A stretch of 64,000 bases of DNA. Source: Corallochytrium limacisporum Hawaii. Its lineage: Eukaryota; Protista; Pluriformea. Every line of letters begins with the position of its first letter. The first letter of the stretch is position 1. Shown here in pieces: positions 39,695 to 45,279 of this stretch. A model generated the notes under the pieces. That model saw only the letters and a program-made list of their open reading frames with translations. It searched no databases and was not told the DNA's origin. The translations under genes and the position numbers were made by a program. The stretch is from assembly GCA_002811645.1 (NCBI GenBank), contig PDIP01000025.1, forward strand, positions 34,245 through 98,244. The letters are read 5' to 3'.

Positions 39695-41482
39695 TTACAT
39701 TGCTTTGGTGAACTGTTGAATGAATGAGCTACCATTGATAATGCCAGTGGTGCCGATCAGATATTCAGCAGCGGGCGTTTCATTCTGGGCCAAGAATCGC
39801 AGAGCAGCAATTTCTGTGAAGGTGCACCCGCCCAGGAAAAAGACAAAATGCATGCTGGGTTGTGATTTCTCTGAATCATTCAGCTGTAGGCGCATTTGTA
39901 CATTAGGGGGCAGGTTCTGAGTGGTGCGGAAGAACCCACCTGGGAGCATGTTTTCAATTTGGTCGACATTGCGCAAATCCCCTTTACGAGAGATCGCCTC
40001 GACCAGGCGCACAGACAATGGGGCGTATCCACTGTGTACATAACTGATGTCATCAGGGTCCATTTCGTCAATGTCGTCGTTGATCAAGCGCAGCATTTTC
40101 CGCAGGTGAGGATACGCAGGCTTCCCGGAGTACTCTCTGAAAAGGTTAGCCGATGCCAGGTTGTCCAAGGTAACGATATGCTTGACTCCGTATGTATGCA
40201 CAATCTCACGACAGTAGTGAGTGTACTGATCGCTTCTCAGCCCACCGGAGGTGATGCTCCACAAACAAAGAAGGCGCAAAACAATTGGAAGCTTCATTTC
40301 TCTGGCAATGGCGGTGTCGATAAAGTCCTTGATCTGCGACGTGTCCCCGTTGCATAAAATGTTTTGCTCACAATTGAGAATGTTGTTAAAATCCTTTTCA
40401 GACGCAATGCGTAAGATCTCTTCTGCAATAGCTGTGTGGATGCTCAAGCTTTGATGTTGCTGCTGCAGCCCACTGAGTTGGCCCACAAAATTTTTCATCT
40501 CCTTGACAGTCTTCACATCGTGCCTCTCATCGTACTTTGCAGACATCGCCTTTGCTTTCTTGTGCAGCATGGGACCCACCTTGGCAAAACTGAGGTCTCG
40601 AATGTCCTTGAACAGCATGTCCTGTGATGAAAGCTGTACCTTTGTCTTCTTACTGCCCTGTCCCGCCGGCTGCATTGCACGTGGGCCTGTTTGGGGCTTG
40701 TGGAAAGCGACATATCCATTCTCGATCCCAAGGACTTCGTCGATCAGACCTTCATGGGTCAACTGAGTGCAGAGGGGTGTAATGAGATCGATGCCTCTAT
40801 CAATAAGCACCAAGCGACCGATCTTGGGGCTGATGAGTGGATCAAATTTGGTGGCCTCCTTTCGCATTCGAAGACACATCTCTGCGGTAATTCGAGAGTT
40901 GTGCCCAAACCCTATGATCTCGGGAATGATTCCCATTATGCTTTGTACCTTCATGATAGCTCGGGCACTTGCATACATTTGGTCACTTTCTCCCAGAATT
41001 TGTGTGTTGTAAAAGGCGCTGTGCAGTTCTAGACTAATAACATCATTTTCGTATGGCACAGCATCAAGTGCCAGCTCCATGACGTGGACCTCCGAGAGGA
41101 CATTCTCTGCCTCCATGATTTCATTGCATAGTTGAACCTTGCGCGGTGTCAGAAGCAAGTAATGATTGGACGGCTCGGGACGAGCTCTCAAGAATCGCAC
41201 ATGTTGGCACACTTTCAAGAAATTACTAGACTTCGGCCTCATGATATACACAACGTTCTCCACATCCTCCCCGATTTCGGCATCGCTTAGAGACTTGAGA
41301 CTGGCCACCCCGAGTTCCCGAAGGAACGGCCAGTCTGTGACAAAGCCGATGAAACCAATAATCGAGTCCTCAACTACGAGACATTTCCTTTTGTCGCGTC
41401 CGATGTCACTCATAACTTCGGTCAGTTTCTGCCGGGCCTCTTTGGTGAGGACTCCTGAAAGTCTTTGCATCTCCCCAGACAT
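39695..41482 (-). CDS. VPS33: Vps33 (Sec1/Munc18-family HOPS/CORVET subunit)
   Basis: DVISLE, LIDRGIDLITPLCTQLTHEGLIDE, DISYVHSGYAPLSVRLVE, FVFFLGGCTFTEIAALRFL, TTGIING. Confidence 0.97.
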   Translation of the reverse strand: MSGEMQRLSGVLTKEARQKLTEVMSDIGRDKRKCLVVEDSIIGFIGFVTDWPFLRELGVASLKSLSDAEIGEDVENVVYIMRPKSSNFLKVCQHVRFLRARPEPSNHYLLLTPRKVQLCNEIMEAENVLSEVHVMELALDAVPYENDVISLELHSAFYNTQILGESDQMYASARAIMKVQSIMGIIPEIIGFGHNSRITAEMCLRMRKEATKFDPLISPKIGRLVLIDRGIDLITPLCTQLTHEGLIDEVLGIENGYVAFHKPQTGPRAMQPAGQGSKKTKVQLSSQDMLFKDIRDLSFAKVGPMLHKKAKAMSAKYDERHDVKTVKEMKNFVGQLSGLQQQHQSLSIHTAIAEEILRIASEKDFNNILNCEQNILCNGDTSQIKDFIDTAIAREMKLPIVLRLLCLWSITSGGLRSDQYTHYCREIVHTYGVKHIVTLDNLASANLFREYSGKPAYPHLRKMLRLINDDIDEMDPDDISYVHSGYAPLSVRLVEAISRKGDLRNVDQIENMLPGGFFRTTQNLPPNVQMRLQLNDSEKSQPSMHFVFFLGGCTFTEIAALRFLAQNETPAAEYLIGTTGIINGSSFIQQFTKAM

Positions 41483-41839
41483 TTTAGCTGGACCTTGCGA
41501 CCTGACTTGTTCGGACCTCTACTACAATATGTCTCGACTAAAATTTACTGTAATCGCTACATCGTTCGCATCATCACACCGACTTAGGGTCAATGTTGTC
41601 AAGATAGATCAATCCTCAGTGATTGAGCTGGTCGTGTTGTGTGTATCAGTATGCCTGTTCTAAAGTACCACAATTTGGCCCGTTAAGCCGGGAATATTAC
41701 TGGTAGAAATTGTATGCCAATTTCAAATACAGACGTAAGCTTCCATACACCCACTATTGAAAATCACATCTTTAGGCCAGTCAATATGGACCGCAGCTGC
41801 ATTAATTTGTTGTATTTGGAAATGCGGCCCCCCCCCCTT

Positions 41840-43729
41840 TTACGTCGAGGCATGGTCAGCAGCACTACCGCCAGTCTCTTCATAGAGTGCCAGGTGCTCA
41901 AGGGCCACTTTGTAGTTATACTTTAGGTCCTCGGTCTCCTCAAAAAAGGAAGGATCAAACGCGACAAGCTCCTTCCTCAGCTTCTCGTTTTCCTCTCGGA
42001 GACTGTTAAGCTCTTCCCCGCCGATAGTCTGCTTCTGGTGCCCGTCTCTAAGGGCTCGATTAAGTTCCTCCTTTGAGAGACCGACCTCCTTCTTGCGGGC
42101 TTCACACTCATCTTGTAATCGGCGTATGGCAGCACTGTTCTCTTCATCGGCGCGAAGTCTGTCCTTGAGCACTTTCTCATAGTCCTTCTCAATGTCTGCA
42201 ATGCTCTCATCGGCCGATCTAATTTTGGTGTGGCTCGCTGTGATGCGCTCTTCTGCTTGTACGACCATGGCATTCAATGTGCGGCTATTTTCTTTCAAAG
42301 GCGCAATGTCGTGGTCCTTCTCCCGGATTTGCTCTCTAAGAAGACCGTTGCGTTCTTGCAATTTAGTGATACGAGCACCCAACTCTGCTGTGACCTTCCC
42401 AGCGTCAGGAGTAGACATCTTCTCTGTCTTCATGTGCTCCAGAGACGCCATGCTACCTGAATACATGTTCTTCATCTTCTCGTACCGCTTAAGGTCCATA
42501 TACTTCGTGTATGGCACACCCTGACCGCTGGTTGCGTCCTTGGCAATGTTATCAGATTCAGTTGGGCGCAGAGACATTCGGTTCTTTGCCGCTGACAATG
42601 CCGGGACTCTCATGCTCGGCTGATGTGGTCTGGAATACTTGAGGTCAAGGAACGAACTGTTCGCTTCAATGATCTCCATTCGGAGTGTCTTGATGGTCTT
42701 TTGCAATCTAGCATTGTCTTTGATCAGCTGAGAGCAATCATTATCTTCAATTTGGGCAACAATGTCCTCGAATTGATTCTGGAGTTGGCGATTGACAGAT
42801 TGCAACTGTTCGTTGGTCTCCTTCAGCTTGCGTACCTCGTTTCTCACACGGTTATCGTCCTCTGGGGTAACCCCTGTGCCGGTGTCCTCGGGTTGGCGGT
42901 TGCTGAGGGCAAATGGAATGGTTTGCCGTGGACGAGAACTCGAGGGCTTTGTCTCCTCCAGCTCCGCCTCAAGCTGCTCCACGGCTGCCTTGCCAGGCCA
43001 TACGTGCCCTCCTCGTACCGCTTGCTCCGCACAGCAAGATCGGCACTGCGTTGTTCACTTACTTGCAAGGCGTCTTCCGTATCCTTCAATTCTTTCTCCA
43101 GTTCCGCCATGGCACCTTTCTCGTCACTCCCTCGGTTCTTCTCGATGGTTGATTTCATACCTTTCATGGCTGTCAGACGGTTGGTAATCTCATCCAGATC
43201 TGTATCTAGCAACTTCCTCGTTTAAGTTCCGAACCAGATCTTCGCTCTCCTGAAGCATCCGCTTCAGACGCAATGCTTCATTCTTTTCAACCTTAATGGT
43301 TTGCTGCAATTTCTGGTTCGCGGAGGTTAAGTTCTGGTTCTCTTCCTGCAGTTATGCTTGTCTAATGACTCGAAGTCTCCGACCACCAAGTTTGACTTGA
43401 CATTCCTTCAACTCCACATCTTTCGTTTCCAGGTCAGTGCTCAGACGTTCAACTTCCACTTCAAGATCTGCAATGTGTTCTGCATTATCTCCCAGTCGAT
43501 CCAGCTCCTCCTCTTGCTGCTCCACCAGTGTGCCCTTCAGTTCCATCACAAGCTTGTGTGAGCTGGAAGAGCTTCATGAGCTCCTCGGGCGAAGCGTCAT
43601 CTTCTGGTGACATTTCTGCATCTACAAGATGATCATAAAGCTCTTCCAGAAGCCCAGTACTGCCTCCTTGTTGTGCAAAGTACGGCCGAATGTCGATGGC
43701 CAAAATATGATCCCAGTCAACATTGCCAT
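41840..43729 (-). pseudogene. CEP290: Shortened, frameshifted CEP290 (ciliary transition-zone protein) relic
   Basis: Joined fragments give M(A)NVDWDHILAID, KLFQLTQ/xVMELK, RYEEGTYGL/AKAAVE and KELVAFDPSFFEETEDLKYNYK. These match remembered CEP290 motifs NINWKEIMKVD, HLFRITQSLMKMK, DYESGVYGLEDAVVE and KELENFDPSFFEEIEDLKYNYK. Frameshifts at about 43725, 43551, 43200 and 42991; TAA at 43354-43352. Confidence 0.85.
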
Positions 43730-44241
43730 GCTTCGGTAGAGCCGCGAATGGCGGCAATAAACGGTGCAGCCATACCAATGTTCCAGTCTATCGTTCCGGG
43801 TGTATAGGTTTTGGCCGTTTATCACATATTTCCAGGCCAGTTGGCTGTGCATGTCCAAATACACCATATCGCTGTGTTAAAAATACCCCTGTTCTGATCA
43901 AGATTAGCGAGCCCAAATAGGCGCAGTTGGCCCAAATCCAGGAGTCCGATCTCCCCCCAGCCAGTTCCCCATAGCATACGCCGCTATTTTCGCGCTTTCC
44001 TTCAGCCAGACGAAGTGCCCAGAGCGTTCGGACGGGAGGAGCGAATGACAGTAGGGAAGAAGTCGCTGCCACCCGCCTTCGAAACTGGCTTAGTGACAAG
44101 GCATCCGAGAATGAAAACAGGCTGGGAATGGAGGCGGGTTTATTGGTTAGAAAAGTACATGTTATGATCAATAATTTGCGATACGAATGGTATGATTTGG
44201 CGCTACTATTTAGCATTCTTTGCAAGATCTTCGAGCCGGAT

Positions 44242-45279
44242 TCAGTCTTCTAATAGGAATCTCAGAGCATTGGTGTTGAACTCCTCAATGGCATCCTGTT
44301 GGACCCAATGAGATGCACCGGGAATTATCTTCAGTTGTCCTTTGCCGGCAGCAATCATCTTTAGCGATTGCTTCGCAGCAGACAGCTCGATTGCACCATC
44401 CTTCTCTCCCCACAGTAAGAGAATTGGACAGTTTGCCTTGACACTTTCGTCTGCGAGGGCAGGATTGCCTTCAATGCTGAACACATTCCGAAAATAGTTG
44501 ATCGGCCCGCTGAAGCCGCCCGGTTGTGCAAAGTAATATCTATAGACGAAAAGCTCCTCGTCGGAAAGGGCGGTTTGCTTGACACCCATGACCTTGCCGG
44601 TGAACATGTGGTCCAATGCTCTAAAATCGTGCATTGACAGATAGAACTCTGGCAGCCAAGGCAGCTGAAAAAGAAATATGTACCAGCTCTTTCGCAGTTG
44701 TGCAATCGAGCTTAGTGGATGAATCGCTTTCGGATGAGGACAGTTTGCGATAATCAACTTGTCTACCATGTGGGGATATTTTAGGACAAAAAGCCAGGAG
44801 ATCATACCACCCCAGTCATGGCTGATGACGGTAGCCTTTTCATGCCCTAGACCCTTTACAATTTGTGCAATATCCTCGACCAAAACAGGCCATTCATAGT
44901 CCCGTGTCTTCGGTGGCCGCTCGCTTTCTCCATATCCCCGGAGGTCTACGGCCACTGTTTGATAGTGCTCAGAGAAAAACACCAACTGGTGACGCCAACT
45001 GTACCAATTTTCTGGAAACCCATGCAATAGGAGCAGAAGGGGGCCAGAGCCTTTCGAGACGAAGTGGAATCTCATCCCGTTGGCTCTAACAAAGCCGTGT
45101 TCCCCCAGTTTGACATCATCAAGGGTTTGTGGCCTCAACGAATAGTCTGATTTACGGAAGACCTGTTTTCCTTCTGTGAAATATAATTGGAGCAGTTTAA
45201 ATGCGACCACAATGCCATAGAAGACTGCAACTGCGCCCACTAATGCACTGAGCAGAAGTTGGCGTGTCGCTGACATCAT
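44242..45279 (-). CDS. Epoxide hydrolase, EPHX3/EPHX4-like alpha/beta hydrolase with N-terminal TM anchor
   Basis: HGFPENWYSWRHQL, DLRGYGES, nucleophile HDWGG, lid SWYIFLFQ and INYFR tyrosines, WGEKD, catalytic HWVQQD. Confidence 0.95.
   Translation of the reverse strand: MMSATRQLLLSALVGAVAVFYGIVVAFKLLQLYFTEGKQVFRKSDYSLRPQTLDDVKLGEHGFVRANGMRFHFVSKGSGPLLLLLHGFPENWYSWRHQLVFFSEHYQTVAVDLRGYGESERPPKTRDYEWPVLVEDIAQIVKGLGHEKATVISHDWGGMISWLFVLKYPHMVDKLIIANCPHPKAIHPLSSIAQLRKSWYIFLFQLPWLPEFYLSMHDFRALDHMFTGKVMGVKQTALSDEELFVYRYYFAQPGGFSGPINYFRNVFSIEGNPALADESVKANCPILLLWGEKDGAIELSAAKQSLKMIAAGKGQLKIIPGASHWVQQDAIEEFNTNALRFLLED

Follow-up and report, generated by a model that had tools for sequence, protein, structure and literature searches.

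A minus-strand locus at 43729–41840 of the window (the whole 64,000-nucleotide stretch of DNA that was analysed) is best explained as a transcribed unitary pseudogene that marks the loss of a flagellum, and as all that is left, in one shrunken copy, of a CEP290-type coiled-coil gene of the transition zone; we assign this reading a probability of about 0.78. Direct observation covers the lesions and their recurrence in independent data, the single-copy status of the gene and the condition of other cilium genes, to which a course of decay may be fitted. The ancestral gene was probably about 2,000–2,500 codons long, and internal deletions would have removed most of its central coiled coil, shrinking it to about 630 codons. 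Afterwards, in the order of events that we infer, the 5′ 40% would have taken four small indels and one nonsense mutation. The promoter would still fire, so that RNA is made, and translation is presumably absent.

Layout and lesions of the locus

The window belongs to one contig of a 24.1-Mb, 286-contig, intron-poor eukaryotic genome. The best match of the lesion-free 3′ open reading frame (ORF) of the locus is the EukProt protein Clim_evm26s141, at 100% identity, which identifies the genome as that of Corallochytrium limacisporum, a unicellular relative of the animals. Neighbouring genes are intact, comprising a Sec1/VPS33 gene for which the Pfam model is covered end to end (1–575 of 575) and a complete alpha/beta hydrolase of 345 aa. 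Since TAA, TAG and TGA all terminate neighbouring genes, the genetic code is standard, and an alternative code is ruled out.

Frames are numbered here by the window coordinate of the first codon base, modulo 3, and all features of the relic are on the minus strand. By direct reading the relic comprises ~630 codons, mostly coiled coil, which are readable only with four frame changes and with one stop passed. The probable ancestral start codon, an ATG in frame 1 (43727–43729), now opens only a 35-codon ORF. Right behind this ATG the frame changes from 1 to 2 at a TGGCAA (lesion 1, 43723–43728), giving the N-terminal piece in frame 2 (43554–43733, ..NVDWDHILAID...LMKLFQLTQ, with NVDWDHIL at 43724–43701 and LMKLFQLTQ at 43580–43554). 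One surplus base at 43553, between ..LTQ and LVMELK.., changes the frame from 2 back to 1 (lesion 2). A coiled-coil piece in frame 1 (43355–43552, LVMELKGTLVEQQ...GGRRLRVIRQA) then meets an in-frame TAA (lesion 3, 43352–43354), beyond which the same frame continues as a further coiled-coil piece (43214–43351, LQEENQNLTSANQ...NLNEE). Lesion 4 is a change from frame 1 to 0 whose position is approximate (43213–43222, near 43215); the piece that follows in frame 0 ends in RYEEGTYGL (42993–43212), its YEEGTYGL block lying at 43017–42994. At a second TGGCAA the frame changes from 0 to 1 (lesion 5, 42990–42995, near 42992). The remainder is the lesion-free 3′ ORF, 380 codons in frame 1 (41840–42982, stop codon at 41842–41840), which contains the conserved C-terminal motif LREENEKLRKELVAFDPSFFEETEDLKYNY at 42001–41912, with the core FDPSFFEETEDLKYNY at 41959–41912. 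A run of ten G lies just past the stop codon (window 41828–41837) and is three bases shorter in a second strain.

When log-odds scores for codon usage were derived from 15 long ORFs of the window and scanned along the locus, the best frames were 2, 1, 0 and 1 over the same intervals as the pieces, and the frame changes therefore belong to the coding signal and go beyond the spotting of motifs. The changes cancel pairwise (1-2-1 and 1-0-1), such that the ATG and the 3′ ORF share one frame. The TGGCAA context recurs at two of the shifts (lesions 1 and 5); this was given no weight, the exact positions of the indels not being determinable. In the sequenced strain no 5′-proximal ORF exceeds 76 codons, and the 3′ ORF amounts to 279 codons when counted from its first ATG.

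Independent sequence data and a second strain

Logan contigs are built from reads independently of the assembly. For two DNA runs of the likely source sample, these contigs are identical to the window over 41400–44400, at depths of 184 and 892. A contig from another sample and another study (X3) covers 41942–43540 with no differences and no gaps, and it carries, unspliced, the TAA of lesion 3, the shift of lesion 4 near 43215 and that of lesion 5 near 42992. The identical DNA contigs of two runs, together with an independent RNA-like contig bearing three of the lesions, exclude an assembly error; the lesions are real, and are neither assembly nor annotation artefacts. No second copy of the N-terminal, middle or 3′ piece was found elsewhere in the genome, an absence that is not absolute given an assembly in 286 contigs.

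The RNA nature of run X3, and of a further run (X4), is the tool's guess. Contigs of these two runs cover three genes and leave intergenic DNA bare (about 41650–41733 and 43860–44132), a pattern which fits RNA and indicates that the locus is transcribed and colinear with the DNA. The transcribed unit of the relic, taken as the extent of the RNA-like X4 contig, would be 41734–43859 on the minus strand; rare spliced or edited transcripts, transcript ends and expression levels lie beyond the reach of such contigs. Runs X5–X7, from sponge and marine metagenomes, hold 5–7% of the locus's sampled words, which may derive from environmental relatives or from a conserved part.

The annotated model Clim_evm26s141 (538 aa) runs over window 43546–41843, starts at the ATG at 43546 and is 100% identical to the 3′ ORF over residues 15–380 of the latter. 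It contains three gaps with GT..AG ends on the minus strand: one of 24 bases that contains the TAA (43369–43346), one of 22 bases (43234–43213) and one of about 44 bases (42981–42938). All three fall within the ungapped X3 contig, and mini-introns are ruled out by this RNA-like contig, which is unspliced at each of them. Model and relic are the same locus, but the model hides the TAA and two shifts behind gaps that have no RNA-like support. Invented mini-introns can in this way mask pseudogenes, which are then counted as present genes in comparative datasets.

X4 has the same organism code as the window, comes from another sample and shows scattered substitutions. Its single 1,464-base contig spans 41734–42813 and 43475–43859. 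At lesions 1 and 2 it is colinear with the window, the only gap in that part being the one at 43701; these two lesions are thus common to both strains and older than the strain split. The stretch at 42814–43474 is absent from the second strain, 661 bases being replaced by one, so that 660 bases net are lost, the frame is preserved and lesions 3–5 (the TAA and both downstream shifts) disappear. A canonical intron is ruled out for this skip, whose ends are AT..CA on the coding strand and whose two sides are separated by one foreign base. The deletion joins the ATG at 43546 to the 3′ ORF, yielding an ATG-led ORF of ~348 codons. In addition, a T-run (43701–43705) is one base longer in the X4 contig, so that the ATG at 43729 again opens the frame of the N-terminal piece, although this frame closes after 88 codons owing to the shift at 43553. 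Four coding substitutions separate the strains, two synonymous (42014, 42263) and two non-synonymous (42776, N>K; 43658, T>A), too few to test constraint. The shared lesions 1 and 2, with the 660-base deletion and the one-base insertion found in one strain, imply that decay began before the split and went on after it; on this reading, the gene was already dead in the common ancestor of the two strains.

The preliminary description of this locus had read ~630 codons in pieces, with landmarks in a fixed order, interrupted by four shifts and a TAA, and direct reading and the codon-usage scan recovered both the order and the positions. Its statements that the neighbours are intact and that sequencing error is unlikely agree with the Sec1/VPS33 and hydrolase genes and with the identical DNA contigs of two runs, respectively, while the erosion by large internal deletions and small indels that it proposed is seen directly in the second strain. 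It had named an assembly error or tiny introns, and an intact copy elsewhere, as findings that would overturn it. Instead, reads-based and transcript-like contigs are equally broken and unspliced, and no piece is duplicated in the 24.1-Mb genome.

Probable assignment to CEP290 and the state of other cilium genes

Significant similarity between the locus and other proteins is confined to the C-terminal ~60 residues, and the related proteins are unnamed. A phmmer search of 1.8 billion proteins gave 87 matches to the C-terminal motif at E<1e-3, nearly all on query residues ~300–378, with E 9e-11 for the best non-self match of the 3′ ORF; blastp gave E values down to 2e-16. In almost all matches inspected the motif forms the extreme C-terminus of a long coiled-coil protein. 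A lack of similarity, which the preliminary description had also listed as grounds for refutation, was therefore not what was found, the C-terminus of the relic matching the C-termini of giant coiled-coil proteins. In an EF-hand-rich protein of ~1,100 aa from environmental contigs (P0070/P0091), a CEP290-type C-terminal motif is internal (residues 804–850); either two genes were fused in the gene call or the domain has genuinely been shuffled.

The relative P0095 was located on an NCBI contig (locus L014, GCA_024449935.1), where three ORFs of 700, 400 and 1441 aa follow one another on one strand and P0095 is the third. The first of these (700 aa) contains ..WKERYEDGYGLADAL.., and the sequence RYEDGYGLA, comparable to RYEEGTYGL of the relic, precedes the C-terminal motif in the same order. 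These ORFs and the two landmarks indicate that YE.G.YGL and the C-terminal motif belong there to one gene of ~2,500 residues. The two landmarks are ~2,160 residues apart in L014 versus ~350 codons in the relic, in which the order of landmarks is kept and a CEP290-like length (~2,000–2,500 aa) is not, only ~630 codons being left.

Searches with the other parts of the locus, run piece by piece or through the annotated model (P0001), were less informative. The N-terminal piece had no significant match in L014, in the ESM Atlas or among the relatives' proteins compared, a set that contained no N-terminus of a relative, and the internal piece had none among the same relatives' proteins. Pfam returned no more than weak coiled-coil noise for any piece; in the ESM Atlas the annotated model matched generic coiled-coil families, and the N-terminal piece had no match. 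The Pfam family CEP209_CC5 (PF16574) had no match in the locus pieces or anywhere in the genome; it had none in the long homologues P0094–96 or the L014 ORFs either, and is thus a weak criterion outside animals. No protein named CEP290 appeared among the phmmer matches, in word-indexed protein searches, in cluster look-ups of 20 matches or in the PDB. The word-indexed searches, whose length window excludes ~2,500-aa proteins for a short query, returned the query itself or unnamed close kin (P0001, region 420–538; P0070, 780–870; P0094, 1000–1356). As a text string, the C-terminal motif was not found in a literature search.

Human CEP290 starts with MPPNINWKEIMKVD.., contains YESGVYGL internally and has the C-terminus ..NFDPSFFEEIEDLKYNYKEE.. 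/ ..FDPSFFEEIEDLKYNY... The N-terminal piece of the relic would resemble the human start, the C-terminal motif appears to be shared and the order of landmarks is the same. The relic is accordingly like CEP290 (NPHP6/MKS4) in its NxxW..I..D start, its internal YE.G.YGL and its extreme C-terminal ..FDPSFFEE.EDLKYNY.., in being coiled coil almost throughout, and in co-occurring with MKS-module genes. In contrast to CEP290, it has ~630 codons rather than about 2,000–2,500, lacks the central region including CEP209_CC5, and bears five disabling lesions with no intact ORF from a start codon. The size of the L014 gene, the order of the blocks and their coiled-coil nature fit CEP290, and the locus appears to be a CEP290-type gene. 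Of the CEP290 motifs claimed in the preliminary description, the C-terminal one has significant database similarity, and the likeness of the N-terminal piece and of YEEGTYGL to CEP290 is putative.

CEP290 assembles the MKS module, to which B9D1, B9D2, meckelin and CC2D2A belong (PMC4794247). One B9-domain gene of the genome (L004, C282:9707–10180) contains an in-frame TAG, and another (L005/L006, C70:23139–23563) contains two in-frame TAGs and a frame change. Of meckelin there is a stub matching the last 43 of 825 model positions, in a 54-codon open frame (L013, C247:5706–5834). The IFT57 match falls into two halves that differ in frame and are separated by 46 bases, and no intron is plausible where they meet (L009/L010, C143:188816–189830). 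Matches to dynein heavy chains with a D6 domain (L007, C184; L008, C182) yielded one only, in a 4,907-codon ORF, the second match being midasin. Neither an axonemal nor an IFT dynein heavy chain was detected in intact form in the genome, and CC2D2A, tektin and RSP3 had no match in it. The N-terminal domain of SAS-6 lies in an uninterrupted 585-codon frame (L015, C230:138930–139304), and, in contrast to the decaying transition-zone genes, this gene of the centriolar cartwheel looks intact. The decay of the CEP290-like gene together with its MKS partners and with motility and IFT genes indicates that selection for a flagellum is relaxed. Support is thereby lent to the earlier proposal that the locus is a fossil of recent or ongoing flagellum loss, given the broken B9, meckelin and IFT57 genes and the absence of matches to CC2D2A, tektin and RSP3.

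Alternative readings and the flagellum question

Neutral decay does not wholly account for the absence of lesions from the 3′ 60% of the relic, which hints that the 3′ ORF was or is under constraint: all five lesions lie within the first 250 of the 630 codons and none in the following 380 (P about 0.01 under a uniform lesion rate). It is conceivable, if unlikely, that only the 5′ part is dead, and that translation of the 3′ ORF continues to yield a short C-terminal piece of CEP290 which has kept some non-ciliary role (e.g. at the centriole or a microtubule-organising centre). Besides the distribution of lesions, such a role would be in keeping with the in-frame deletion that links the ATG at 43546 to the 3′ ORF in the second strain, with the synonymous nature of two of the three between-strain substitutions in the 3′ ORF, with transcription of the locus in both strains and with an intact SAS-6. 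However, in the sequenced strain the 3′ ORF has 23 ATGs ahead of its first in-frame one, two synonymous changes against one non-synonymous carry no statistical weight (P about 0.15), and a deletion is in frame by accident one time in three. Furthermore, >1,800 central codons, including the only Pfam-defined CEP290 region, are gone, and the partner genes are dead. The more specific proposal that selection has kept the 3′ 60% as a C-terminal CEP290 fragment, co-opted once the flagellum was lost for a task outside the cilium (perhaps at the centriole), with the 660-base deletion of the second strain acting as a repair that reconnects an ATG, is likewise unlikely.

Two further readings question whether the gene is broken, or which gene it is. 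Tiny introns, RNA editing, programmed frameshifting or read-through, perhaps only in a rare flagellated stage, could leave the gene intact at the RNA or protein level, and the GT..AG gaps of 24, 22 and about 44 bases by which the annotated model bridges three lesions, the pairwise cancelling of frame changes (1-2-1, 1-0-1) and the TGGCAA at two shifts could be cited in favour. We regard this as hardly credible, since the RNA-like X3 contig follows the DNA base for base through the TAA and two shifts, and the stretches that the model skips continue both the coiled coil and the codon signal; the model also omits the N-terminal piece and leaves the two 5′ lesions unbridged. Moreover, no single recoding signal fits the mixture of lesions (TAA here, TAG in the B9 genes, +1 and −1 shifts, large deletions), and a 660-base deletion between strains would be unexpected in a conserved recoded gene. 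Alternatively, the locus might be a broken coiled-coil gene other than CEP290, its C-terminal motif belonging to another family or being a shared short module. The failure of the Pfam, PDB, Atlas and word-indexed protein searches to return a named CEP290, the occurrence of the motif within the EF-hand protein P0070 and the lack of significant matches for the N-terminal and internal pieces among the relatives' proteins compared would all be accommodated. This, too, is improbable: nearly all matches inspected are long coiled-coil proteins that end in the motif, the L014 gene of ~2,500 residues has YEDGYGL upstream in the same order as in the relic, and the landmarks of human CEP290 come in a matching order.

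The preferred reading, a transcribed unitary pseudogene, places the relic among the unitary pseudogenes that follow the loss of a trait (e.g. ciliary genes in flagellum-less lineages). Like these, it is single copy, presumably at its original locus and between intact neighbours; it carries frameshifts, a nonsense codon and deletions, its partners are decaying in parallel and it is still transcribed. In contrast to other such cases, the relic has been caught early, with frames, codon bias and end motifs still readable, it is in different stages of decay in two strains, and genes of this kind were counted as present in published work predicting a cryptic flagellum.

That work, by Torruella et al. 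(2015) as cited in PMC7147346 and PMC12731214, predicts a cryptic flagellated stage in Corallochytrium from its toolkit genes. A detailed life-cycle study of the organism does not mention a flagellum and describes no flagellated stage, and no report of pseudogenised cilium genes or of CEP290 in this organism was found in a literature search. For the transition-zone gate-keeper and its partners in the MKS module, the genes are dead or close to gone, and no more than one dynein heavy chain was found. The proposal in the literature that Corallochytrium limacisporum hides a flagellum looks doubtful, and Corallochytrium may represent flagellum loss caught in progress, a view that we prefer to that of a hidden flagellate. 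The matter has some reach, as reconstructions of the animal ancestor draw on few unicellular lineages, Corallochytrium among them; at this locus and at the few other cilium genes checked, the presence of a homologous transcript or gene model does not amount to the presence of a functional gene. Strain-level polymorphism at the relic could serve to date steps of flagellum loss.
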